Positions 646-47,296 of a stretch of 64,000 nucleotides of DNA are shown here, piece after piece (the stretch's first letter is position 1; each line of letters begins with the position of its first letter). The stretch is from the sequence record NC_042060.1, one strand, 5' to 3'. The notes under the pieces were generated by a model that was not told the origin of the DNA, made no database searches, and saw only the letters and a program-made list of their open reading frames with translations. A program made the translations under genes and the position numbers.

Positions 646-1020
646 TTAACCCCTATTAACAAAGATAAAATAATCTCGTAGTTCACCAGCTAAATCTAAT
701 GGTTGATAATTATCACTACCATCATCATAAGGGATATAATCAGCACCTGCTTCTACAGCCGCTAAATATTCTTCCTCACCAACTGCTGGAATTAAATGAA
801 ACGCTGGGCAATCGTCATTATTGCCATCTAGTATATCTAGCATGCCTGTAATGACACTATCTGCTACAGCCCTGTCCCGATCAGCTGGCTCTGTAAATTG
901 ATCAAGTTTAGAGTTATTGATAGCATTATCACGCATATTGACAACACTACTAATAAATAGTTCTTTAACTTGTTCCTGTGTTACAGGTTTAACATTACCA
1001 TCGCCTTCAAAATAGATCAT
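646..1020 (-). CDS. Hypothetical protein, paralog of 1065..1751
   Basis: Shared LDG..PxFxLIP..GxLR motif. Confidence 0.85.
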   Translation of the reverse strand: MIYFEGDGNVKPVTQEQVKELFISSVVNMRDNAINNSKLDQFTEPADRDRAVADSVITGMLDILDGNNDDCPAFHLIPAVGEEEYLAAVEAGADYIPYDDGSDNYQPLDLAGELRDYFIFVNRG

Positions 1021-1064
1021 AATTACATACCTTGTTATCAGTAGCTTATAAATTTATTAGTTCA

Positions 1065-1751
1065 TTAACGCATTATTCGACTGATATCATCAGCTATTTG
1101 TGATTGTATCTTTTCCGCTTTTTCTTTAGCTTTTTCTACTAACATAGCAAGTTGCTCTTGCGTAAAATTACCCGAGTAATACTTAACAGGTTTCTCACCT
1201 GCTAAACTAAGGAAATGGTTCAATAGTGCATGTGGTCCTTTGAAAGGTTCCGTAAATGTCTTAGAAACTTGATAACGTAGATTACCAGAAATATCAACTG
1301 CATCACACTTTGCACGGATATTATCTTTTAAATTTTCAACTGGGTTTACTGGCCAATAATTCTCACCAATACTTATTAGGTAGTCAATATCCTCTTGAGT
1401 AACATTAGGTATAAGTTTGAATCCGGGTATATTTGGATCATTGCCATCTAGGCCAGCTGCGATGCTATATATAAATCCATCAAGCATATCTCTGATAGAT
1501 AGTGCCTTATCTGTATTTTGAGTATCGGTATACTGTTTATGCCAGTAATTACGTGTGCTTTGAAGCCAATTTACAAAGAGAGAAGTTTGTTCCTCTTTTG
1601 TATATTCTCTCGGATCATCTACTTTCTCCCATTCTTTTTGTTTATTTATCTTAGGAGTCTTAGTTTTCTTTACAGGTTGTTCAATCGGTGAATCTGAAAC
1701 CTTTGTTTCAAATCCTATACCAACTATAGTTTTATCGGTTGTATTGATCAT
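1065..1751 (-). CDS. Hypothetical protein, paralog of 646..1020
   Basis: 228 aa, AGLDGNDPNIPGFKLIP motif. Confidence 0.85.
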   Translation of the reverse strand: MINTTDKTIVGIGFETKVSDSPIEQPVKKTKTPKINKQKEWEKVDDPREYTKEEQTSLFVNWLQSTRNYWHKQYTDTQNTDKALSIRDMLDGFIYSIAAGLDGNDPNIPGFKLIPNVTQEDIDYLISIGENYWPVNPVENLKDNIRAKCDAVDISGNLRYQVSKTFTEPFKGPHALLNHFLSLAGEKPVKYYSGNFTQEQLAMLVEKAKEKAEKIQSQIADDISRIMR

Positions 1752-1978
1752 AGAACATGAAACCTTTGTATATAGTTTGGTTTTATGCGTTTAGTAAATT
1801 GCGCTGAATGCTCAATGTAATAAATGCATTTATCATTAAGTGAATACACTGTATAATAGGTTTTAGCACATATATGTCGTATGCCAATAGTAACACATAT
1901 TTCCCAACCGATCTTTGTAAATACATAACCTAACTGATTAGGCTCTATTTCTAAACATCTTTTGTCGAAGTTAACCAT
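1748..1978 (-). CDS. Hypothetical protein
   Basis: 76 aa, overlaps both neighbours in the operon. Confidence 0.65.
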   Translation of the reverse strand: MVNFDKRCLEIEPNQLGYVFTKIGWEICVTIGIRHICAKTYYTVYSLNDKCIYYIEHSAQFTKRIKPNYIQRFHVL

Positions 1979-2418
1979 TGTGGCTTCCTCGGAATAGTTC
2001 GCAAGTACTGAACAATAAGTCGCGCGAATTCATCCATATCGTCTTCAACTAGAATTAACTCATCCAATGTATACCAGCCATCATCAGTTGTTTCAATTAG
2101 ATTAGAATCATCTTTGATTTCTCTATCTAAGATGGCGTATAATCTAGTTGGTCCAAAATCAGGCTCTTCTATAACCCCAAGATGTATCAAAGAATTTCTA
2201 TTATTAGTATCATCTGTGATAGTTGGCTGAACACTAATATTGGAAGTTTCCTCTGGGAAGTTATAACTATCTAAAATAGCAAAATCAGTTAATTGTCTAA
2301 TAGCCTTTCTAGTGAAATCATAAACCTTCACTATGGGATGAATCACATAGGTTAGTTTATCATTAACTAAACGTTGCCTTAAATTAATAAATGCGCAGTT
2401 ATTCATCGACATACTCAT
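1951..2418 (-). CDS. Possible degenerate NUDIX-fold protein
   Basis: ITDD..IHLGVI and WYTLDEL resemble COG4112-type NUDIX; no Nudix box. Confidence 0.45.
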   Translation of the reverse strand: MSMSMNNCAFINLRQRLVNDKLTYVIHPIVKVYDFTRKAIRQLTDFAILDSYNFPEETSNISVQPTITDDTNNRNSLIHLGVIEEPDFGPTRLYAILDREIKDDSNLIETTDDGWYTLDELILVEDDMDEFARLIVQYLRTIPRKPQWLTSTKDV

Positions 2419-2773
2419 GTACCATTTTAATAGTTTTCAAAAATACTTCTTGATTATTACTATCATCTGCTTTTAGAATAACAGGATGACACATAAATTC
2501 ATTTTCCAATGATACTCGATAATATTCATTAATTGTCTGAATGAAATCAAGCGGGGGATAAATAATAATATCCTTATCTGTTTCGGCGTAATTAACTACA
2601 TTTGGTTCATGTTTAAATTTGGATTTATTTAATTTATAAACAAAGTATTTTATATCATTTTTATCTACTTGTGATACAAATACAATTCGTTCATACATTG
2701 ATAAATCAATATCTTTACCAATATTGATAGACAGTGGCATACCAATAAATGAGCGTTTAATATTTTCATTCAT
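2399..2773 (-). CDS. Hypothetical early protein
   Basis: 124 aa, first gene after promoter at 2813. Confidence 0.8.
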   Translation of the reverse strand: MNENIKRSFIGMPLSINIGKDIDLSMYERIVFVSQVDKNDIKYFVYKLNKSKFKHEPNVVNYAETDKDIIIYPPLDFIQTINEYYRVSLENEFMCHPVILKADDSNNQEVFLKTIKMVHEYVDE

Positions 2774-2812
2774 TTTTTAATTACCTATTTAATAGTTTAA
2801 TGTTGTATTAGT

Positions 2813-2820
2813 GTAATATA
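2813..2820 (-). promoter_or_regulatory. Early promoter TATATTAC
   Basis: Exact motif preceded by TTTGAAATC. Confidence 0.85.
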
Positions 2821-2847
2821 GATTTCAAAAAAAATTTAATGTAAAAG

Positions 2848-2867
2848 CCCTCTCCTTTGGGAGAGGG
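2848..2867 (-). terminator. Intrinsic terminator
   Basis: 8-bp stem CCCTCTCC/GGAGAGGG plus T tract. Confidence 0.8.
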
Positions 2868-2876
2868 TTTATGACT

Positions 2877-2984
2877 TTATTTATATTTTTTCTTATGAGT
2901 GTGATAAATATAGCTAAATAGCATACCGATTGACATTGATACAGCTACCATACCCACATAGAAAAGTTCATTACTAAGTTGCAT
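2877..2984 (-). CDS. Small membrane protein (35 aa), not in ORF track
   Basis: [35 protein letters not shown]; GAGGAAA RBS; own terminator. Confidence 0.7.
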
Positions 2985-3020
2985 TAGATTTCCTCAAATA
3001 GTTTAATTTATCCCACCTAG

Positions 3021-3044
3021 TTTTAACCGTCCAGTCGGTTAAAA
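3021..3044. promoter_or_regulatory. Perfect inverted repeat TTTTAACCG-N6-CGGTTAAAA
   Basis: Read directly; abuts the terminator at 3045; function unknown. Confidence 0.45.
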
Positions 3045-3064
3045 AGAGGACCCGAAGGTCCTCT
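3045..3064 (-). terminator. cUUCGg terminator
   Basis: AGAGGACC-UUCG-GGTCCTCT on the minus strand. Confidence 0.8.
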
Positions 3065-3066
3065 AA

Positions 3067-3306
3067 TTATTTCTTATAACTCTCAGGGCATCCCATTTTG
3101 AGTTTGCCATCCTTTGGGTCTTCAGCGAATAATACTTCATCTGGACACTTCTTAACAGGAGTGTCCTTCGCCTTATCTTCCCATTCTACAACAGGCATTT
3201 CTAATTTCTTACGAAATTGATACGTATCATAAAGAACATACGTAATCATTCCCATAAGAGAGATTACCCATACCCATGCAACAATTAGGATGATTCTAGT
3301 TATCAT
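3067..3306 (-). CDS. Small bitopic membrane protein with a C-terminal Cys pair
   Basis: N-terminal TM; CPDEV..MGCP. Confidence 0.8.
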   Translation of the reverse strand: MITRIILIVAWVWVISLMGMITYVLYDTYQFRKKLEMPVVEWEDKAKDTPVKKCPDEVLFAEDPKDGKLKMGCPESYKK

Positions 3307-3673
3307 ACAACTCCTCGCCGACTATATTGAAACACCCATTACTGAGTTTTTCAGTCAGCATCTCACCAAGATCACTTCCCTCGCTCTTTGCCAAAAGCTT
3401 AAGTGCGGGATCAGTGAGATTTTGGTATATTACATCGACATTATCCAATGCGATATTAATAGCGAGTGCCTTATCACTCTGGTTTTTATCTATGGCAATG
3501 GATAGTTCATCTTGCAGTATTGCATACATCTCCAATGGCTCACCGCCATTAGTGTAGAATTGAACCATATTCTTTGCCAAGCTGTGCAGCACGTAGCAAG
3601 ATGACACGGTTACGGGTTGTGCATTAACCGACATTGCTACCATAGTGATAATGAGCGAGAAGACGTATTTCAT
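3296..3673 (-). CDS. Secreted two-Cys family protein
   Basis: Signal peptide ending SVNA; VTVSSC...CFNIVGEEL. Confidence 0.85.
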   Translation of the reverse strand: MKYVFSLIITMVAMSVNAQPVTVSSCYVLHSLAKNMVQFYTNGGEPLEMYAILQDELSIAIDKNQSDKALAINIALDNVDVIYQNLTDPALKLLAKSEGSDLGEMLTEKLSNGCFNIVGEELYDN

Positions 3674-3705
3674 CCTATTTTCCTTTTGAAAGTATTCGAT
3701 ATGAA

Positions 3706-4161
3706 TTAAATGAGTTCAACAATTACCATGTGAGTGAATTTCTCACCAATATGCTTCATGCAGTAATTGCCATAATACCCGCTGATAAAAGCTGCCAGAT
3801 TAGGAGTAGTCACATTGTAACCTTGACTACGGATATAATCATGGATCTCTTTACTGTTAAGGTCATTATTGATTTTATTAAGACTATTGAATACGAATGT
3901 TAACGCAATCCAATTATTGGTATCCAACTCATCTTTGAGTTTAGCAGAGTTGTTGAGCATAAGCACACCAACTTCATCTGCGCTATGACCTTCACTCATT
4001 CGAAATACAGCTTGTTTAGTAATGGTTTCAACCATTGCACACGACTGCACAGTGAGTTGAGCATCTTTTTTACCAATCTTGATTTCAGCCATTGCGGTAT
4101 TGAACATGATACCGGTAATGGCAATGAGACCAGCGAAAGCTGCTGCAATTACATTTTTCAT
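3706..4161 (-). CDS. Secreted two-Cys family protein
   Basis: Signal peptide ending AMA; LTVQSC...CMKHIGEKF. Confidence 0.85.
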   Translation of the reverse strand: MKNVIAAAFAGLIAITGIMFNTAMAEIKIGKKDAQLTVQSCAMVETITKQAVFRMSEGHSADEVGVLMLNNSAKLKDELDTNNWIALTFVFNSLNKINNDLNSKEIHDYIRSQGYNVTTPNLAAFISGYYGNYCMKHIGEKFTHMVIVELI

Positions 4162-4178
4162 TTTAAATCCTTCTTCAT

Positions 4179-4562
4179 TTATTTAATGGTAAGAATAGTA
4201 ATTTTTTCAGGATTTACTGGAACTTTAATTTTAGATTTATGTTGGAGAAACTCAACAACCACCATAGACTTATCCATTTTATACACTTCACATACTTTGA
4301 CAAGCCTATCTACTACGCAACCAATTTTACCGGCATTTTGAGAAAAGAAAGATTTTGCTTTTCTAATAGCCTCGCGTTTCTCAAGCATTTCCATATGCAT
4401 ATTTTCAATATGTTTATCGCGTTGAACACGATTAAACTTACGCATATGTCGTTCGATCTTACTAATTTCAGAAGAGTGTAATGAATAAGCAGCAGCTTCT
4501 TTCAGTTTCTCATATACTTCCACTGCCATTACCACGTGATCATCTTCAAAATTTCTTTTCAT
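4179..4562 (-). CDS. Basic cytoplasmic hypothetical protein
   Basis: 127 aa, K/R-rich, helical N-terminus. Confidence 0.8.
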   Translation of the reverse strand: MKRNFEDDHVVMAVEVYEKLKEAAAYSLHSSEISKIERHMRKFNRVQRDKHIENMHMEMLEKREAIRKAKSFFSQNAGKIGCVVDRLVKVCEVYKMDKSMVVVEFLQHKSKIKVPVNPEKITILTIK

Positions 4563-4575
4563 ATCTATGCCTTTT

Positions 4576-5370
4576 TTACTGTTTGATTAAATTTGACACT
4601 GCTTCTTGTTTACATTGAGTATTCATCCATAATGCAATGTCTTTGGGTTCTTGTCCAGTTTCCACCATATCGATAATGATACGGGTATTACGTTGTGCTT
4701 TCTCACGGGCATTTAACATATCAGGATCATTAATAATGAATTCCCTACCCATAACTGGATCTAATCCAATATAAGCTTTAGATGCAATAGTTCTCACCAT
4801 TGCTTCATATTGATCACATCCACGTTCAGTTAATACAAGGTTATCTGCATTGGCACTACCGCCAAATAGCAAACCTAGGAATCCATAGAAAAAAGTGTGA
4901 CGTATTGTCTTCCAACAAATACGCATCTCTTCATTTTTTGTATAAAGCTTTTCCCAATCAAACATTAAATAGAAACTTTCTTTTTGGATAGAAGGGTGTA
5001 ACCAAATAGGTTTAATACTTACTTCAAGAAGTTTACTATTTGGATTCTTACCGATAAAGATAACTTCAACAATGGCTCGTGCTAAAGCATCTTTTTCTTT
5101 ACCATTCCATCCAAATTTTATTTCATCAGCCGTAATGTAAAGACGTATTCCATCACCCACGTATTTGGGTAACCAAACAGCTTTACCTAGTTGCACTGGA
5201 ACATCATTAGGGATTCCCCCAACCATCCAGGTGGCCTTGGTGAAATGAATAGCAACATCATCATTCAACCATTTTAGAATAGCTGGCCTTACCCAACTAT
5301 CTACCAAATTACCACATGTCAATGCAGCTAGCATAGCCATGAGCATAATGACAATATAGATACTAATCAT
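4576..5370 (-). CDS. Membrane protein fused to a secreted two-Cys domain
   Basis: N-terminal TM; internal signal-like segment ending ANA; LTERGC...TQC. Confidence 0.8.
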   Translation of the reverse strand: MISIYIVIMLMAMLAALTCGNLVDSWVRPAILKWLNDDVAIHFTKATWMVGGIPNDVPVQLGKAVWLPKYVGDGIRLYITADEIKFGWNGKEKDALARAIVEVIFIGKNPNSKLLEVSIKPIWLHPSIQKESFYLMFDWEKLYTKNEEMRICWKTIRHTFFYGFLGLLFGGSANADNLVLTERGCDQYEAMVRTIASKAYIGLDPVMGREFIINDPDMLNAREKAQRNTRIIIDMVETGQEPKDIALWMNTQCKQEAVSNLIKQ

Positions 5371-5373
5371 AGT

Positions 5374-5733
5374 CTACTCCAAGTTAAATTTAGTACCAAT
5401 TGCTTCAACACAATTTTCAGCTAACCTATCTAGGATAGCTCCATTGGTAAATCCTTTTCGTTTATTTACTCGAATATCAACTAAGTTTAACTTGGCATAT
5501 ACCGCACCTGCATAGAACTCCAAGTCATCCATATCCTTACGAGAGATCATGTCTAACTGCATCATTATCTCAAATTGGGATAGGTTCTTATCATAAAGCT
5601 CAGTTGCTTTTTGTGAAAGATTTACTGCCACATTACATGATTTCTTAGTAATACCCACTTCTACAGCGTGGGCAGGCTGACATGCAATGGACAGGATTGG
5701 CAGGAAAAGGAATAATAGCCAATTCTTAAGCAT
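5374..5733 (-). CDS. Secreted two-Cys family protein
   Basis: Signal peptide ending AHA; ITKKSC...CVEAIGTKF. Confidence 0.85.
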   Translation of the reverse strand: MLKNWLLFLFLPILSIACQPAHAVEVGITKKSCNVAVNLSQKATELYDKNLSQFEIMMQLDMISRKDMDDLEFYAGAVYAKLNLVDIRVNKRKGFTNGAILDRLAENCVEAIGTKFNLE

Positions 5734-5745
5734 GTTGTACCTCCA

Positions 5746-6153
5746 TTATTTTAGAGTAAGTGGTTTTGCTTCAAACGCACCTGCCGCTACACAACGCTGG
5801 AAATAACCATCAATGATGAATTTCTCAGGAGTGGTCTTATAGACTTTAGCAGCATTTGTTGCACGTGGCAAACTTGCCTCAATTGCCATTTTATCTACCT
5901 TAGACCATAGGTAAAATAGACCAGTGAGTTCTTCAACTTTAGACTGGTTGGTCTTTAGATCTTTAGTGTTATTAAGGATATAATGAATCCTTTCATAAGT
6001 CTTCATTTGCACTTCAGTTACAGATGCACCTTTTACAAACAATTCATCTGCCTGTTTTACAAACTCGATGCATGAATCACGATTAGTGTACATGACAGCC
6101 GAGTTAGCAGTGATAGTTACAATAGACAACATAAATGCAATTACATATTTCAT
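5746..6153 (-). CDS. Secreted two-Cys family protein
   Basis: Signal peptide ending ANSA; TNRDSC...RCVAAG. Confidence 0.85.
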   Translation of the reverse strand: MKYVIAFMLSIVTITANSAVMYTNRDSCIEFVKQADELFVKGASVTEVQMKTYERIHYILNNTKDLKTNQSKVEELTGLFYLWSKVDKMAIEASLPRATNAAKVYKTTPEKFIIDGYFQRCVAAGAFEAKPLTLK

Positions 6154-6179
6154 AATGAATTACCTCAAAATTAATTTTA

Positions 6180-6443
6180 TTAACTATTGGTTTCACCACG
6201 AGTATTGAATTCTAAATCCAATACAACTTTAGTAAATTCTTCCAGTGCACCACCCTCGTAGATGAGTGGGTCACTGTCACCCCGGTACATGCTACCTACC
6301 GGTACTTGACCACGAAACACCATCAGCATATCGTTTTTTACTATGACATGATGTTCATCCCCGACAGCAATGTCTTGGATGTGTCTCCAGCGTTCACGCA
6401 GTAAGCTGCAAGCGCACCATACGGATTTCAAACGTTCAGTCAT
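6180..6443 (-). CDS. Hypothetical early protein
   Basis: 87 aa, GAGG RBS, first gene after promoter 6477. Confidence 0.8.
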   Translation of the reverse strand: MTERLKSVWCACSLLRERWRHIQDIAVGDEHHVIVKNDMLMVFRGQVPVGSMYRGDSDPLIYEGGALEEFTKVVLDLEFNTRGETNS

Positions 6444-6476
6444 TGTATTGCCCTCTTGGTTATTAAATTCATATTT

Positions 6477-6484
6477 GTAATATA
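6477..6484 (-). promoter_or_regulatory. Early promoter TATATTAC
   Basis: Exact motif after terminator 6524. Confidence 0.85.
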
Positions 6485-6523
6485 GCTTTTTAAATAGTTT
6501 AAATACAAAAAAAGATAAATAAA

Positions 6524-6543
6524 ACCCTCCCCGAAGGGAGGGT
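6524..6543 (-). terminator. cUUCGg terminator
   Basis: ACCCTCCC-UUCG-GGGAGGGT plus TTTT. Confidence 0.9.
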
Positions 6544-6561
6544 GTATATTAAGTAATTATT

Positions 6562-7218
6562 TTAACATACAATTTCATTATCAGAAAATAGTTTATTATA
6601 TTCTTTTAGTGCATCCCCACCAACCATAGTACACCTGCCATAGAGAACAGATATAGCCAGATCTTTAATAGCGGGGTGACAATTATTTAACTTACTGATT
6701 AGTTGAGCTTTCTCAGTCAGATACAGTTCAGCAAAATCAGGCTTATCATTAACAATCGACCACATGTTTGAAATGGAATCTAGTAACTTAAGAGATTGAC
6801 CACTCCATGAAATGCGAGAAAGTCTTTCATGTTGTAAACTAATCCTAGTTTTACGATTACCTTCGTAAGTTACATTTGTTAGTTCAGTTACTAAATTAAC
6901 AACAGGGATTGAGAATAGTTTAGTTAGATCAGAAGCAGTTACAGCAGTATCCTCAATTACATCATGTAACCATGCTGCTTTATAAGCAGCGTGAGATAGG
7001 TCGAATAATTGCGCCATCTCAGCTACTTGTAATAAATGATGCCAGTAAGGTTTTCCTGAACCATCTCGCAATTGACCAACAGCAGTATGTGCCGCAATGG
7101 CATATGATGCAGCCATTGCATTACCCGCATTGGAATATTTGCCATTACCTAGATGGTTAGTTAAGAGAATATTCTCTTTCCCTCCTTCTAGAATATCGAT
7201 AATTTCATTCATTAGCAT
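6562..7218 (-). CDS. RelA/SpoT-type HD hydrolase (small alarmone hydrolase-like)
   Basis: AH..GQ.R..SGKPY..H; WLHDVIEDT; LKLLD. Confidence 0.85.
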   Translation of the reverse strand: MLMNEIIDILEGGKENILLTNHLGNGKYSNAGNAMAASYAIAAHTAVGQLRDGSGKPYWHHLLQVAEMAQLFDLSHAAYKAAWLHDVIEDTAVTASDLTKLFSIPVVNLVTELTNVTYEGNRKTRISLQHERLSRISWSGQSLKLLDSISNMWSIVNDKPDFAELYLTEKAQLISKLNNCHPAIKDLAISVLYGRCTMVGGDALKEYNKLFSDNEIVC

Positions 7219-7248
7219 AGCTATATTCCTATTTAAATTATTGGAAAC

Positions 7249-7683
7249 CTAATATAGGTCTTCACTAAATAAATATTTAGTTACTAATCTATTTTCTAAT
7301 TCAGCTCGATATAACTGATTATTATTCTTAGCGATAATTACTGCTTCTTCCCTAGAGTGGAAGTTTTCATACTGATCAATAAAACCTTGTTCATGATCAT
7401 CTCCTGCATATTCATGCAATACCTTAAGACCACCATACATTAGCTGTTGTTGAGTCATTATGATTGATGAATGCCTCGCTGCAATGAAATAAACATCCTT
7501 CCATCTATTGCAGGCGGCAACTATCCTTAATTTCACATCGGGATGTTGTTCCCACCACCATAGACCAGTTTCCTCATTCCAATACCTTTCTTTCATTTGA
7601 GTTTTTCTAAACTCACCTTGTATGTCTAAAAGTCTAAATGCCTCTTCTTTAGACATAGCTTGTAGAATAGGATACTTATCCAT
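7249..7683 (-). CDS. Conserved phage hypothetical protein
   Basis: IVAA..ARH..EQGFIDQ..REEA..LFSEDLY pattern familiar from other phages. Confidence 0.8.
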   Translation of the reverse strand: MDKYPILQAMSKEEAFRLLDIQGEFRKTQMKERYWNEETGLWWWEQHPDVKLRIVAACNRWKDVYFIAARHSSIIMTQQQLMYGGLKVLHEYAGDDHEQGFIDQYENFHSREEAVIIAKNNNQLYRAELENRLVTKYLFSEDLY

Positions 7684-7712
7684 TTAATACAGATACCTAA
7701 TTGCGAAATAGA

Positions 7713-7732
7713 AAGAGCCCCGAAGGGCTCTT
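7713..7732 (-). terminator. cUUCGg terminator
   Basis: AAGAGCCC-UUCG-GGGCTCTT. Confidence 0.8.
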
Positions 7733-7733
7733 A

Positions 7734-8090
7734 TTATACAAGTAGCTTTTCAATAGTGAAGCTTGTCCAGACCATTGCCCTATAACCAACACTCTCTTCA
7801 GTATAAGTGATATCATCAAACTTATTAGGTGGCATGAAACCACGTTGTGTACTAGCATCAGTCACAACAAGATTAGAATCTTTTAAAGTTTCATTTAGAG
7901 CCTTAAGTTTATCCTTACTAATTGATCCCTTAACATGGAACTTAAAATAAGCATAGCCTTTATGATTGATACGACAACTTTCAAGAACAGTTTGTTTATC
8001 ATTCATTTGACTCATCAGATCACTAATAACTGCATCATCTACAGGAGTATCATCATTGACAATATTGATTAATTCAATATAAGTTGGCAT
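7734..8090 (-). CDS. Hypothetical protein
   Basis: 118 aa, AAGGA RBS. Confidence 0.85.
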   Translation of the reverse strand: MPTYIELINIVNDDTPVDDAVISDLMSQMNDKQTVLESCRINHKGYAYFKFHVKGSISKDKLKALNETLKDSNLVVTDASTQRGFMPPNKFDDITYTEESVGYRAMVWTSFTIEKLLV

Positions 8091-8147
8091 TCTTTTTGTT
8101 TCCTTAATTAGATAAACTACATAAGATAATTTTTAATTGATATTCTA

Positions 8148-9044
8148 TTAAATTTTCAATAGGAACCCATTGTGATTAAATGAGATAATACAGTTATGCC
8201 CCATCATGACAGTATGATAAGATACTATATTGTCACGTGTATTATTTGAAATCTTGTTCACCTTAAATTCATTCATGATAGCATTATGAATGGCTAAGTC
8301 TTTTTCTCGATACTGATTTGAAAAAATAATAACAGCAGGGTTAATATTGATAGTATCCATTGCATTAAGAAAATATTCAACATCAAACTTTTTAATAGTT
8401 TCAGATTTTCCAACACAACCCTTAGTTTCATCAATTAATGAAAAACCAATAGTTCTAATTGGTTCGTCCTCATTATGGAAGTCATAATTGGTAATGCTCA
8501 TACCTATCAATAGTCCATTTTTATCTACATTAACTACTTTAGAATCAGTGTACTTATAAATATCACTGATTGCATAACCAGCCGAATACAATACATCTTT
8601 AAAATGACTAGTTACTTTATCAATAATAAAGTTTTGATAATCTGTTTGATATAGTTTATCACTATGTTCAAGCTTTTTGATAATATCACTTAGTTCATGA
8701 TACACGTTGGTAAAACTATTCGAAAAATAATTATCTTTTATTCCTAACCTAGTTAACAGATCTAGCTGGATTTCTTTTTTAGATAGTTTCGTAGAATTAC
8801 TAAGTTTTTCAATGACGGATGTAATTGTACGTAGATCAATTGCTAGTGAAAGTGATTTAAAGATATTATTAATTGGTGTATCAGATAGCTTTGAAATAGC
8901 TATTAGTAGATTATCTAATTCATCATTAGTAATTTTCAGTTCTTTCACAATATCATTATATTCAATTAGTTTACCATCAATAATATTACAGATTAAAAGT
9001 TTATGTAATTCTTTAATAGTGGTATTAACTTGTAGATTATTCAT
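8148..9044 (-). CDS. Hypothetical protein, very AT-rich
   Basis: 298 aa, helical N-terminal half. Confidence 0.85.
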
Positions 9045-9064
9045 TTTTTTACCTTTTAGTTAAT

Positions 9065-9502
9065 TTAAAATTTATTTACAGCTCTAAGAAAATATTCAGA
9101 TGGATCATCGAAGAAGACAATACTATCAACAACACTATTTTGTCGAGTACACCTTACTTTGATAAGATTATATTCTCTGAATTTATTAAGCCCCCAAGCT
9201 TCTTTAGCACGATGGCGTAACCCACTACCAACAATAGCCCCATACCTAGTTTGTTCAACAAATAAATAAACATCCCAGCCATGATGATTATCATGGTATT
9301 TTGCGTAGTATTTATTGTCTTTAGTTTTGTTTAAACTAAGACTATACCTTTCTGTCTGTAGTTGATTAATATTCGATTTAATCATTTCATTTAATTTGGG
9401 TTCCACTGTATGAATGACATCGCCAGCAGTAGTGGCCATTACCTTTAGTTTGTGATGCACGTTCGTAAGAACGTCCTCCCAAATGTTAGTAACTACGTCC
9501 AT
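9065..9502 (-). CDS. Hypothetical early protein
   Basis: 145 aa, after promoter 9548. Confidence 0.85.
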   Translation of the reverse strand: MDVVTNIWEDVLTNVHHKLKVMATTAGDVIHTVEPKLNEMIKSNINQLQTERYSLSLNKTKDNKYYAKYHDNHHGWDVYLFVEQTRYGAIVGSGLRHRAKEAWGLNKFREYNLIKVRCTRQNSVVDSIVFFDDPSEYFLRAVNKF

Positions 9503-9547
9503 CTATTAAAACCTCGACACATTAATTTGATTTTGTAATACACACAT

Positions 9548-9555
9548 GTAATATA
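9548..9555 (-). promoter_or_regulatory. Early promoter TATATTAC
   Basis: Exact motif. Confidence 0.85.
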
Positions 9556-9556
9556 T

Positions 9557-9607
9557 ATCTCAAATAAAATTTAGTGCAATAGCCCTCCCCGAAGGGAGGG
9601 CCATATG
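9557..9607. repeat. 51-bp exact repeat, copy 1 (other at 24722..24772)
   Basis: Base-by-base comparison; includes terminator 9582..9601. Confidence 0.9.
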
Positions 9608-9613
9608 CTCTTA

Positions 9614-9943
9614 TTATCGATTAACTACACGATAATTATCAATAATAAACTCGATGTACTGTTCGACATCATGTAAGAAGCAGCTGTAGCTATACCGATC
9701 AAGTTTATTTAAAGCTTCAGTTAGAACTGGTTCGATATAGATATTTATTTCAGCTATTGATGGAATCTCAACATACTTATTTTCATATTCGGTAAGCTGC
9801 TCCTTTACCTTAGCCATTTGCTTTTTGTAAATGTATTCCATAGACCATTCTTTGTAAATGGAGCGCGCCCCATCAAAGAGATGGTAACCAAATGCAATAC
9901 CACCAAGCACCAGAACACCAGTGGAAATAGATGACATATTCAT
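9614..9943 (-). CDS. Early membrane-anchored protein, positional candidate for phiKZ gp241
   Basis: 109 aa, N-terminal TM, own promoter and terminator; gene number inferred by counting only. Confidence 0.8.
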   Translation of the reverse strand: MNMSSISTGVLVLGGIAFGYHLFDGARSIYKEWSMEYIYKKQMAKVKEQLTEYENKYVEIPSIAEINIYIEPVLTEALNKLDRYSYSCFLHDVEQYIEFIIDNYRVVNR

Positions 9944-9979
9944 GACATATCTCCTTTTTTCAAGATTGAATTCATATGT

Positions 9980-9987
9980 GTAATATA
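9980..9987 (-). promoter_or_regulatory. Early promoter TATATTAC
   Basis: Exact motif. Confidence 0.85.
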
Positions 9988-10027
9988 CTGTTTAAATATG
10001 TTTGAATACAAAAAAACACAATATAAA

Positions 10028-10045
10028 ACCTCCCCGAAGGGAGGT
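10028..10045 (-). terminator. cUUCGg terminator
   Basis: ACCTCCC-UUCG-GGGAGGT plus TTTT. Confidence 0.85.
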
Positions 10046-10072
10046 ATTTATGGTAACTTTGTAAAAGACTTA

Positions 10073-10555
10073 TTATAGTTGAAAGTCTTTATCTTCTTCA
10101 ATGATTTCATAACCTGGTGAATTAACTATATTTTTATTTAAACGAACTCGTTCATCTACTAAGTGTTTAACTACTTTAAGTAATTGACTTATTGACAGGT
10201 CATTATTTTCATCGGTATCTGATTTAAAAATACGACCACTGGTAGGTGAAGCATTTGTAAAACTAATACCTTCATTATCTTTATAAATATCATAATACCA
10301 TACGACATATGGACTATTGGTATTACTTATGACAAATACTAAAAATAGATCTTCATCATCACCTTGACCACACAGGATCCCGATATTTTTCCGATGCGTT
10401 ATACCACCTGTAATAATCAGGCCATCAGCATCACCACCGAATTTAAATATATCATAACCACCTTCAAGTTTACCATTTTCAAAATACTGTAATAGTGCAC
10501 CACCTACCACAGCACCCCATGAAAAGAAGTTATCTTTGTTTAGAAACTCAATCAT
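10073..10555 (-). CDS. Hypothetical protein
   Basis: 160 aa, GAGGA RBS. Confidence 0.85.
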   Translation of the reverse strand: MIEFLNKDNFFSWGAVVGGALLQYFENGKLEGGYDIFKFGGDADGLIITGGITHRKNIGILCGQGDDEDLFLVFVISNTNSPYVVWYYDIYKDNEGISFTNASPTSGRIFKSDTDENNDLSISQLLKVVKHLVDERVRLNKNIVNSPGYEIIEEDKDFQL

Positions 10556-10556
10556 C

Positions 10557-10739
10557 TTAAAAATCCTCTTTAGGTTCAGTGATTCGAGAATAAAGAATAA
10601 ACATATCGGTTAGGATATTTCTATCTAGTTCATAATTATCTTTAATACTTAATTGAATAGTTCCATATTTAACATTGGCACGTGTAAATAAGATTCCATA
10701 TTGAAATATACCTGTAGTACACAAATTATAAAACAACAT
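10557..10739 (-). CDS. Doubtful ORF
   Basis: 60 aa; ATG directly after a terminator T tract, no RBS. Confidence 0.3.
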   Translation of the reverse strand: MLFYNLCTTGIFQYGILFTRANVKYGTIQLSIKDNYELDRNILTDMFILYSRITEPKEDF

Positions 10740-10741
10740 AA

Positions 10742-10770
10742 AAAGAGAGAGGAATTTATCCTCTCTCTTT
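10742..10770 (-). terminator. Intrinsic terminator
   Basis: 12-bp stem AAAGAGAGAGGA/TCCTCTCTCTTT. Confidence 0.8.
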
Positions 10771-10786
10771 ATGCAACTAAATAGTT

Positions 10787-10909
10787 TTATTCTTTTTGCT
10801 TTTCTTTAGCTTCACGTTTAGCTTTGAGTTCTGCATTATTAAGCCGCCAAGCAGCTTGCATAGTAGCTAGATTGACAAACTTAGGCTGTTGCTTATTTTT
10901 AACTTTCAT
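10787..10909 (-). CDS. Small basic protein (40 aa), not in ORF track
   Basis: MKVKNKQQPKFVNLATMQAAWRLNNAELKAKREAKEKQKE; GGA RBS; terminator follows. Confidence 0.65.
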   Translation of the reverse strand: MKVKNKQQPKFVNLATMQAAWRLNNAELKAKREAKEKQKE

Positions 10910-16106: not shown

Positions 16107-16364
16107 CTATTTATTTACACAGATTAGAGTATGTTCTACTTTACTAGTACTAGAAGAAAAATAACGTAATAGAACACCATCACTGATTTTTACAGTCTCT
16201 ACATTATTACGAATAGCACTTGCTTTAGCTAGTTTTTGAATGCGCTCAATCGCGCTAAAACAAGTAGCCATGTCAGAGAACTCAGCGGTTGACTGCGATG
16301 CACCATTGGCTTGATAACCAGCGATACTGATACTACTAAAAAGAATTGCTAAAGTTGCATTCAT
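16107..16364 (-). CDS. Small exported protein with two Cys
   Basis: Hydrophobic N-terminus; EFSDMATC...LICV. Confidence 0.75.
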   Translation of the reverse strand: MNATLAILFSSISIAGYQANGASQSTAEFSDMATCFSAIERIQKLAKASAIRNNVETVKISDGVLLRYFSSSTSKVEHTLICVNK

Positions 16365-17968: not shown

Positions 17969-17976
17969 GTAATATA
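17969..17976 (-). promoter_or_regulatory. Early promoter TATATTAC
   Basis: Exact motif; 30 bp identical to 2812..2841. Confidence 0.85.
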
Positions 17977-18033: not shown

Positions 18034-18324
18034 TTATTTATTTTTCTTTCTTGACTTATCTTTAATAACTAAGTCTAATGCTTCAAACATTTTAACAGCA
18101 GTTAAATGGTCGATAGAGTATGCCTTTTTACGTAAACGTCCAATAGCTACTGTATACTGGTATTCAGATAAACCATCACTCATATTGTCAATAATTGATA
18201 GTGCTTCTTTATAAAGCCTGTTACACTTTATCGTGTGTTTGATGGCATAATAACCCCAGTTAATTAAAGCCATCATTATAATCAGAAACAAAATACCTAT
18301 AATTACTGTCATGATATCATTCAT
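18034..18324 (-). CDS. Small bitopic membrane protein
   Basis: 96 aa, N-terminal TM and basic tail. Confidence 0.8.
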   Translation of the reverse strand: MNDIMTVIIGILFLIIMMALINWGYYAIKHTIKCNRLYKEALSIIDNMSDGLSEYQYTVAIGRLRKKAYSIDHLTAVKMFEALDLVIKDKSRKKNK

Positions 18325-18634
18325 TTGCTGTTTCCCTATTATTACATTTTAATATAATCAATGAGTTGATATCGTAAATAAAAGATGTAAAAATATGTTG
18401 ATTTGTTATTTTAGATGATTCTTTATCTATAATGTCTTGGACAGCATTTTGATAGAAAAAATAACTTATGCCATTGGGCATTTTATCTAATACATATCTA
18501 ACCTTATAAACACCCATCCAGTGAATATAATGATTTTTTATATTAATAATGAAAGTTACACATGTTGATATAGCCGTTAGTGTTATCATTGATATAACAA
18601 ATACTTTATACATTTGCAACCCACAGATTCTCAT
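18317..18634 (-). CDS. Small bitopic membrane protein
   Basis: 105 aa, N-terminal TM. Confidence 0.75.
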   Translation of the reverse strand: MRICGLQMYKVFVISMITLTAISTCVTFIINIKNHYIHWMGVYKVRYVLDKMPNGISYFFYQNAVQDIIDKESSKITNQHIFTSFIYDINSLIILKCNNRETANE

Positions 18635-18669: not shown

Positions 18670-19038
18670 TTATTTTACAACCACAGCTTTACCGTAGTTG
18701 TTATCCATACAGGTTTTAAATGATGTAACGTATGCATCACGTGGGCTTTGTCTACGTGAATACACAACGTGCACCTCTTTAATTGCTGCTGGGAGAACAT
18801 TGTAAAGAACGTTATCTTTGTTCTTCACGCCGTACCCTTTTAGGGATCGTAGGTTTTCTTCCCATTGTAAAATGGGTGTTTTACGCTGACGTGCTTCTGC
18901 TGTGGCATGTGCTATAAGTGCAACACCATTACAGTAATTCTCGTCAACTACCAACGATGCAGCTAGTGGGTTTGATACGTATAACAACGTACTTAATACG
19001 GCCACTAACTTCATTACGTGTGTTAAACATTGCATCAC
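18670..19038 (-). CDS. Secreted two-Cys protein
   Basis: MKLVAVLSTLLYVSNPLAA signal; ENYC...KTCM. Confidence 0.8.
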   Translation of the reverse strand: MMQCLTHVMKLVAVLSTLLYVSNPLAASLVVDENYCNGVALIAHATAEARQRKTPILQWEENLRSLKGYGVKNKDNVLYNVLPAAIKEVHVVYSRRQSPRDAYVTSFKTCMDNNYGKAVVVK

Positions 19039-33495: not shown

Positions 33496-33503
33496 GTAAT
33501 ATA
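33496..33503 (-). promoter_or_regulatory. Early promoter TATATTAC
   Basis: Exact motif preceded by TTTAAATC. Confidence 0.85.
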
Positions 33504-47288: not shown

Positions 47289-47296
47289 GTAATATA
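47289..47296 (-). promoter_or_regulatory. Early promoter TATATTAC
   Basis: Exact motif preceded by TTTGAGATT. Confidence 0.85.

Follow-up and report, generated by a model that had tools for sequence, protein, structure and literature searches.

A diverged family of small, putatively exported cysteine-pair proteins encoded by an early accessory operon of phiKZ-like phages

The gp247-gp252 segment of phage PA7

The subject of this work is a gene cluster in a 64,000-nucleotide stretch of DNA from sequence record NC_042060.1 (hereafter the window), which represents the phiKZ-like Pseudomonas phage PA7 (100% identity) and is 99% identical to phage phiKZ. Positions 3296-6153 of the window correspond to phiKZ genes 252, 251, 250, 249, 248 and 247, which all lie on the minus strand and are all annotated as hypothetical protein. 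An initial annotation, made from the sequence alone, described this segment as an early operon encoding an array of five paralogous secreted proteins with a single disulfide. We refer to the five units by their phiKZ names: gp252, gp251, the C-terminal half of gp249 (gp249C), gp248 and gp247. The analysis presented here shows that gp248, gp251 and gp252 are one diverged family, to which gp249C, judged from predicted structures, probably also belongs, and that gp247 is a look-alike of the same layout, whose common ancestry with the others is unproven. The genes encoding the units are the following.

5746..6153, minus strand: gp247; Cys28 and Cys121 after a predicted signal peptide; layout as in the others, membership unproven
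5374..5733, minus strand: gp248; founder of the family and its conserved member; lipobox-like Cys18, then the predicted AHA-V site; invariant Cys33 and Cys108
4576..5370, minus strand: gp249; open reading frame (ORF) of 264 amino acids; C-terminal unit with the mature part at about 4576-4845, Cys185 and Cys253
3706..4161, minus strand: gp251; family member, long form of 151 amino acids; Cys41, Cys134 and CMKHIGEKF
3296..3673, minus strand: gp252; family member of 125 amino acids; Cys26, Cys114 and CFNIVGEEL

Signal peptides, cysteines and shared motifs

All five units have a hydrophobic segment with the n/h/c organisation of signal peptides and a small-x-small cleavage site, which is N-terminal except in gp249, where it is internal. 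The predicted cleavage sites are VNA-Q (gp252), AMA-E (gp251), ANA-D (gp249), AHA-V (gp248) and ITA-N (gp247), in agreement with the initial annotation, which had reported signal peptides with AxA-type sites. Judged from these signals, the units would be exported to the cell envelope. Each mature unit contains exactly two Cys residues, at mature positions 8 and 96 in gp252, 16 and 109 in gp251, 10 and 78 in gp249, 10 and 85 in gp248, and 12 and 105 in gp247. In all five, the first Cys is thus found 8-16 residues past the predicted site of cleavage, and the second lies 11-17 residues from the C-terminus; by a rough estimate, which assumes uniform placement, the probability of finding such an arrangement five times by chance is about 3e-7.

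The first Cys is part of a motif, [LIV]TxxSC, which had been ascribed to most of the units. We found it in gp252, gp251 and gp248; gp249 has LTERGC at this place, and the gp247 version is shifted by one residue. The C-terminal motifs described previously, CMKHIGEKF in gp251, CVEAIGTKF in gp248 and CFNIVGEEL in gp252, are indeed in register, and the general pattern CxxxhGxx[FLY] recurs in the relatives of these three proteins from four other genera. It is not present in gp247 or in the C-terminal unit of gp249.

Possible lipid attachment was assessed with the PROSITE PS00013 pattern (Cys at position 15-35, Lys or Arg within the first seven residues). The pattern was matched by gp248 and by 11 of its 17 relatives, i.e. 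by 12 of the 18 sequences; the Cys itself is present in 15 of the 18 and missing in three. All 18 gp248-type sequences have, about five residues after the lipobox position, an AxA-type signal-peptidase I site. On the basis of this pattern gp248 may be lipid-anchored. There is no lipobox in gp251 or gp247, and a lipobox indicated for gp252 was rejected as a false positive, because the only match to the pattern was at the structural Cys26, downstream of the VNA-Q site.

gp249 differs from the other units in its architecture. It starts with a hydrophobic segment (amino acids 1-19) that lacks N-terminal charge, continues with a domain of about 130 amino acids, and has a signal-peptide-like segment at amino acids 149-175, whose hydrophobic part (159-175) is preceded by Lys, Arg or His residues. 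The same arrangement is found in a diverged phiKZ relative (L008, see below). There is no properly spaced Shine-Dalgarno sequence upstream of Met149, thus the C-terminal unit is probably made within the 264-residue gp249. The positive-inside rule would place the middle part of about 130 amino acids in the cytoplasm and the C-terminal unit in the periplasm. From its sequence gp249 looks like an unrelated membrane protein fused to a family member, which has retained its signal peptide.

Small ORFs combining a signal peptide with a Cys pair were also seen outside the operon, all on the minus strand, at 18670-19038, 18317-18634 and 16107-16364. In one of them, which has 122 codons for amino acids, the sequence ...PLAAS-LVVDENYC is followed by a second Cys (Cys36 and Cys110). 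In profile comparisons none of the three resembled the family of gp248, gp251 and gp252. To judge from such sequences, the phage may export additional small disulfide proteins.

gp248-type proteins: distribution and structure model

Homologues of gp248 were found by tblastn in PhiPA3, Phabio, Psa21, D6, PS119XW and other phages. An exhaustive profile search, which used gp248 and PhiPA3 gp303 as query against 1.84 billion representative proteins, returned only 14 gp248-type representatives. All 14 are 104-125 amino acids long and have the same layout, and the Cys pair is invariant among them at mutual identities of just 23-41%. Related-loci searches with single proteins returned PhiPA3 alone, and a word-indexed protein search found close relatives only. 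In other genera the gp248-type gene is usually situated one or two genes downstream of an HD-hydrolase gene; in the Phabio and Psa21 stretches no HD gene is annotated. A copy-number survey, which had been suggested together with the initial annotation, showed that the size of the array varies: there are three units in PS119XW, two in Psa21, and one each in PhiPA3 and Phabio. In PS119XW the gp248-like, gp251-like and gp247-like genes are consecutive. Many nucleus-forming phages of Pseudomonas have retained gp248, the ancestral copy, and the remaining copies of the family, among them gp251 and gp252, are lineage-specific duplicates.

gp248 is a full-length member of the uncharacterised phage family PHROG 15284 / VOG9823 (E 1.6e-56), which includes PhiPA3 gp303 as well, and gp251 matches this group weakly (E 0.0026), whereas gp252, gp249 and gp247 are in separate, singleton-like PHROGs. 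We found no meaningful family for the units in Pfam, PADLOC, NCBIfam, among PHROGs with function, or by sequence search of the PDB. The literature searched contains no functional account of gp247-gp252 either, as had been supposed.

The AlphaFold2 (AF2) model of gp248, built from the 14-sequence alignment, has a mean predicted local distance difference test (pLDDT) score of 89.6, and the values are about 97 in the mature domain and 94-98 per ten-residue block for residues 31-110. The model consists of the signal helix, a strand (25-27), five helices (30-48, 53-67, 71-82, 84-92 and 97-110) and a second strand (115-117). The [LIV]TxxSC and CxxxhGxxF motifs correspond to the two strands of the model, thus they bring the termini together, and the invariant Cys residues are located 6-7 residues inside the strands, a position compatible with a disulfide clamp. 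In the oxidising periplasm Cys33 and Cys108 would presumably be locked by one disulfide. The other members of the family would share this fold.

Relationship between the units

In pairwise comparisons of the units by BLASTP and phmmer, a full-length alignment was obtained for gp251 and gp252 only (BLASTP E 8e-5, 123 amino acids). Because pairwise similarity was almost nil, we built profiles from the relatives of the units; hidden Markov models that mixed subfamilies were less sensitive. Relatives of gp251 are present in PS119XW and Psa21, and a tblastn search with gp251 at E <= 1 found phages of the phiKZ species only. Alignment of the mature domains by hhalign gave E 4.2e-6 (probability 87%, 94 columns) between the gp248-type and gp251-type profiles, E 1.7e-4 (probability 49%, 102 columns) between gp251-type and gp252-type, and E 7e-4 (probability 26%, 36 columns) between gp248-type and gp252-type. 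When the 103 ORFs of the window were ranked, gp248, gp251 and gp252 were mutually the top non-self matches, with a background of at most 18. gp249C was third-ranked against the gp248 profile; it scored with no other profile, and there was no reciprocal sequence match to the other units.

The model of gp248 was also compared by Foldseek with the predicted structures in BFVD. It matched an entry of 151 amino acids, which is the size of gp251 (probability 1.00, TMq 0.61), and a 264-residue entry, A0A494WC04 (probability 0.95, TMq 0.59, 111 columns), which we took to be gp249 from its length and accession series; both entries belong to a phiKZ-like phage. It also matched its own orthologues and proteins of 150-161 amino acids from 201phi2-1, Phabio and Psa21 (probability 0.95-1.0, TM score about 0.6). 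The AF2 model of gp247, which shows five helices with the Cys residues at the outer ends, is unreliable (pLDDT 52), since the alignment of four sequences has too little depth, and it matched its own BFVD entry only, and poorly. The PS119XW relative of gp247 shares with it the C-terminal sequence C....F[ED]PKP[LF]T.

These data leave room for the interpretation that there is no five-member family, and that next to the related gp248, gp251 and gp252 the other two units, gp247 and gp249C, are unrelated exported proteins which acquired the same layout by convergence. The hhalign E values of gp247 against every other unit are at least 0.14, it ranks 14th-76th among the ORFs of the window for the profiles of the other units, and the lack of a reciprocal match for gp249C points in the same direction, as does T4 Spackle, a protein of the same layout without detectable homology (see below). 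On the other hand, the five units share the operon and the positions of the Cys pair, the gp248 model matches the gp249-sized BFVD entry, and in PS119XW the gp247-like gene follows directly the gp248-like and gp251-like genes. We regard convergence of both gp247 and gp249C as improbable. The notion of a paralogous array thus stands for gp248, gp251 and gp252 (hhalign E 4e-6 to 7e-4), it extends to gp249C in predicted structure, and it does not hold for gp247 as far as sequence profiles are concerned. The part of our explanation which states that the units form a family and are exported seems quite likely to be correct.

Resemblance to saposins

Saposins are lipid-binding proteins of eukaryotes, lysosomal or secreted, with six conserved Cys residues and three disulfides, of which the outer ones tie the first helix to the last. 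In the Foldseek search of the PDB with the gp248 model, saposin A, saposin C and Na-SLP-1 held five of the seven top ranks (probability 0.72-0.93), with target-normalised template modelling (TM) scores of 0.57-0.67, a root-mean-square deviation of about 3 Å over 73-92 columns, and E values of 0.5-1.3. Among the best 50 matches all non-saposin structures had a probability below 0.2, and no PDB entry matched at E 1e-3 or better. The HdeA/B and Rap/Tai immunity folds, with which a comparison had been proposed, were not among these 50 matches. The likeness between saposins and the gp248 model lies in the helical bundle of similar size with a disulfide that would tie the first helix to the last. 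The gp248 family differs by having one disulfide instead of three, two Cys residues per mature domain and no Pfam SapB domain, and by the extra two-stranded sheet formed by the N- and C-terminal parts. For the 14 members there was no match to the Pfam saposin family at E <= 10. Since neither the pattern of three disulfides nor a Pfam saposin domain is present, we consider this a topological resemblance and not membership. A literature search on saposin-like phage proteins found nothing relevant.

It is conceivable that the units are saposin-like binders of lipids or membranes (phospholipid, lipopolysaccharide (LPS), acyl chains of lipoproteins), which remodel or stabilise the envelope early in infection, perhaps through changes in membrane trafficking or permeability, and have no protein target. 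The high ranks of the saposins and the predicted single disulfide between the first and last helix would be in line with such a role, and so would the lipobox-like Cys of gp248 and its behaviour in published gradients, where about half of the protein was in the pellet (pellet share 52% for gp248 and 71% for gp250, with gp247 in the top fractions; PMC10914614). It must be noted, however, that none of the saposin matches had an E value below 1e-3, that small helical bundles match each other easily, and that neither the six-Cys pattern nor a Pfam saposin match, even at E <= 10, was found. We therefore think that this role is unlikely. Still less likely seems a version of it in which the phage would carry a single-disulfide saposin fold as a lipid/LPS module and the array of paralogues would rewire lipid handling or permeability within minutes; we know of no phage for which such a saposin-type envelope activity has been described.

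The operon and its expression

The units share their transcription unit with genes outside the family (gp246.1, gp250 and gp253). After the promoter the gene order is gp246.1, 247, 248, 249, 250, 251, 252 and 253, followed by a hairpin. The remaining features of the operon are listed below.

6524..6543, minus strand: intrinsic terminator of the gp246 (HD phosphohydrolase) transcript; 8-bp GC-rich stem, TTCG loop and T-run
6477..6515, minus strand: phiKZ early-type promoter; T-rich block, then the TATATTAC box at 6484-6477
6180..6443, minus strand: gp246.1; ORF supported by phiKZ annotation, opens the operon; lacks a signal peptide, outside the family
4179..4562, minus strand: gp250; co-transcribed; no hydrophobic N-terminus or signal peptide, outside the family
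3067..3306, minus strand: gp253; small membrane protein with N-terminal transmembrane segment and C-terminal tail containing two Cys; last gene of the operon
3045..3064, minus strand: operon-end intrinsic terminator; GC-rich, AGAGGACC-TTCG-GGTCCTCT then TTTT, directly 3' of the gp253 stop codon

The promoter at 6477 and the terminator at 3045 are both where the initial annotation had placed them. The TATATTAC box and the T-rich stretch lie directly downstream of the gp246 terminator (6543-6524), and the region agrees with the published description of phiKZ early promoters, an extended -10 element with a T-rich upstream element (PMC8244752). The extended promoter context is common to about eight minus-strand sites of the window, most of which are located directly behind a terminator hairpin. 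A scan of the window for sigma-70 promoters was uninformative (29 found vs 27.5 expected), as is expected for a phage that relies on its own polymerases.

Further TATATTAC boxes were seen on the minus strand at 128-135, 2813-2820, 9548-9555, 9980-9987, 17969-17976, 33496-33503 and 47289-47296. These copies have the same T-rich context, and their upstream sequences fall into two sub-types. They probably mark the remaining early transcription units of the 64-kb stretch. A small gene, gp253.1 (2877-2984, 35 amino acids), which encodes a transmembrane segment and KKKYK, lies between the terminator of the operon and the following one; no obvious promoter box of its own was seen.

The operon was compared with its counterpart in L008, a diverged phiKZ relative represented by a 6,390-bp contig from the public sequencing run SRR33991144. 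L008 keeps the gp246 terminator, the TATATTAC promoter (1862-1993 of L008 vs 6180-6561 of the window) and the operon at 61-96% protein identity. gp246.1 is missing from L008, hence the operon does not always include it. The fastest-diverging gene of the operon is gp250 (61% identity) and the best conserved one is gp253 (96% identity). gp250 has no similarity to the ORF found at the same position in Psa21, which shows that it is not a conserved partner of the units.

The assignment to the early genes agrees with published phiKZ transcriptomes. In an RNA-seq series sampled every 2 min, all transcripts of PHIKZ246.1-252 started from about 0, reached 200-500 units at 2 min and were still climbing to 10 min (PMC10914614). 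The gradient proteomics of that study gave strong signals for gp247, gp248, gp249, gp250 and gp251 and a weak one for gp252, and labelled all of them non-structural (PMC10914614). In Churi the gp248 homologue was present at 15 min; in the overexpression screen of that study gp335 alone was singled out as an inhibitor of PAO1 growth, while for the gp248 homologue the paper gives no outcome (PMC11849849).

Transposon sequencing (Tn-seq) of phiKZ recorded 883-10,893 reads and 8-33 insertion sites per gene of the operon, compared with 13 reads for the essential chmA (PMC12676376). Since every gene of the operon tolerated insertions, the operon is dispensable on PAO1 in rich medium. It is located within the orf184-304 block of non-essential genes, for which the authors suggested host-interacting or defence-related roles, and about 70% of phiKZ genes are laboratory-dispensable and of unknown function (PMC12676376). 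The main text of the Tn-seq study gives no conditional phenotype for the operon genes (PMC12676376). Taken together, the operon is early, and accessory in the laboratory host.

Possible role of the putatively exported proteins

By its biology and layout, T4 Spackle (Sp, gp61.3) is the closest known analogue of the units, one that the initial annotation had not named. Spackle is an early, periplasmic helical bundle of 75 amino acids with one disulfide (Cys29-Cys81), which inhibits the gp5 tail lysozyme of superinfecting phage (PMC7677548). Likenesses between the two include an early gene, a signal peptide for export (predicted for the units) and a compact alpha-helical bundle. The Cys residues of Spackle are about 7 residues past the cleavage site and 16 residues from the C-terminus, the corresponding values for the units being 8-16 and 11-17. 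The precursor of Spackle shares with gp248 a pattern of three Cys and a similar end of the signal peptide (SCAAQPAMA-G vs IACQPAHA-V), and the fact that it is cleaved after AMA, despite the Cys in its signal peptide, is a caution against calling gp248 a lipoprotein. Spackle differs from the units in its length (75 vs 89-126 mature residues), in being encoded by a single gene and not by an array, and in having a known target. Homology suggested by a full-length hhalign comparison with T4 sp (L009, 9759-10052; E 5.6e-4) was rejected, because the similarity lies in the signal peptide, which in Spackle and in gp248-type proteins finishes with a Cys and then Q-P-x-x-A at the cleavage site, and disappears when mature domains are compared.

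Another group of phage proteins that can be compared with the units is formed by T5 Llp and Cor, which are small, early, exported, lipid-anchored lipoproteins that block receptors. They resemble the units through the lipobox-like Cys of most gp248-type proteins, and phage 'lipoprotein' entries were among the weak structural matches, but there is no sequence match or confident structural match, and three gp248-type members lack the Cys. Llp of T5 mediates superinfection exclusion (PMC9586334).

On the basis of these comparisons, the following mechanism can be proposed. The RNA polymerase that the virion injects would transcribe the accessory operon in the first 2 min after infection, and the host Sec pathway would carry several of the small proteins into the cell envelope. 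There the mature family domain (gp248, gp251, gp252 and probably gp249C) would adopt the five-helix bundle, with its termini meeting in the two-stranded sheet formed by [LIV]TxxSC and CxxxhGxxF and with the flanking Cys pair locked by the disulfide. Each copy would bind a periplasm-exposed target soon after infection, and the infected cell would be protected as a result; one example would be a Spackle-like block of the tail enzyme with which a second phage cuts the cell wall on entry. Judged by analogy, the most likely role would be an accessory one in the periplasm, for example superinfection exclusion. An exported family from an early accessory operon with a Spackle-like protective role is in our opinion the best overall explanation of the data, although we can put it forward only tentatively, and superinfection exclusion as the specific mechanism is possible but rather doubtful.

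Several observations weigh against this explanation. Saposins, the sole coherent resemblance found in the PDB, are binders of lipids and not of enzymes. Spackle and the units have no detectable homology in comparisons of their mature domains (hhalign E 0.03-0.6), and Spackle is not among the best 50 Foldseek PDB matches of the gp248 model. As to the family itself, the sequence alignment of gp249C with gp248 is in a shifted register, in which the Cys residues are not aligned, and gp247 has an hhalign E of at least 0.14 with every other unit. The export of the units is a prediction. Finally, the units are 71-86% identical to their L008 counterparts, vs 78-91% for the neighbouring genes, i.e. they do not diverge faster than their neighbourhood, and this ordinary divergence gives no support to an arms race.

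The last point also bears on the possibility that the units are counter-defence or host-takeover factors directed against envelope functions of the host, such as membrane-associated defence systems, pili, flagella, secretion or efflux machines and periplasmic enzymes, different paralogues serving on different hosts. Such a function could be accommodated by the position of the operon in the non-essential orf184-304 block with its suggested host-interacting or defence-related roles, by the different copy numbers in different phage genera, and by the dispensability of the genes on PAO1. It is, however, difficult to reconcile with the lack of a match in PADLOC or to any other family, with the divergence from L008, which is not of the arms-race type, and with the main text of the Tn-seq study, where no conditional phenotype is mentioned. 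In our view this is a rather improbable explanation.

A role in the timing of lysis must also be considered. One or more of the units might, like the antiholin RI of T4, act in the periplasm by sensing superinfection and delaying the triggering of the holin. Lysis of phiKZ cultures is slower when the multiplicity is high, for which lysis inhibition was suggested by the authors (PMC12894885), and T4 RI is exported with a cleavable signal peptide (PMC8385771). Nevertheless, the periplasmic domain of the phiKZ holin gp142 is small and its known regulator, gp143, is cytoplasmic (PMC12894885), the operon is expressed early and lies far from the lysis cassette, and similarity to RI was not seen in any of our searches. 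We find a lysis-timing role very unlikely. The possibility that the operon itself is the lysis cassette was rejected, since the cassette consists of gp140-144.

The family is an uncharacterised one in a heavily studied phage; it resembles a kind of phage function that is already known, but its fold is distinct and rare and its occurrence in several copies is unusual. The earlier view that they are a strong candidate for an undescribed system appears overstated, as phiKZ can do without the genes on PAO1 and there is nothing that joins the units in a single system. phiKZ is the model of nucleus-forming jumbo phages, and attention has been directed almost wholly to the cytoplasm and the phage nucleus. 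The operon indicates that proteins seemingly built for export to the envelope are made as well, and this within 2 min, and it bears on superinfection exclusion in phages of the phiKZ type, on the sensing step of the suspected lysis inhibition and on the countering of envelope-level defences. The confidently predicted, disulfide-clamped bundle, with its 14 representatives in 1.84 billion proteins, also gives structural and binding work a clearly defined target.

Annotation of the genes in sequence databases

In the RefSeq record of PA7 (NC_042060) three genes of the operon, gp104 (3296-3568), gp103 (3067-3255) and gp110 (6180-6323), start later than their phiKZ counterparts. The start of gp104 is so late that the gp252 homologue lacks the whole signal peptide, and its export character would thus be overlooked in the PA7 record. 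Many fragments with 85-100% identity to gp247-gp252 are filed as 'partial [Klebsiella pneumoniae]' and come from contigs of 210-718 bp, and complete copies, located on phage-sized contigs, are filed as 'Pseudomonas aeruginosa'. These Klebsiella- and Pseudomonas-labelled copies look like reads of phiKZ-like phages inside bacterial assemblies, not bacterial genes.

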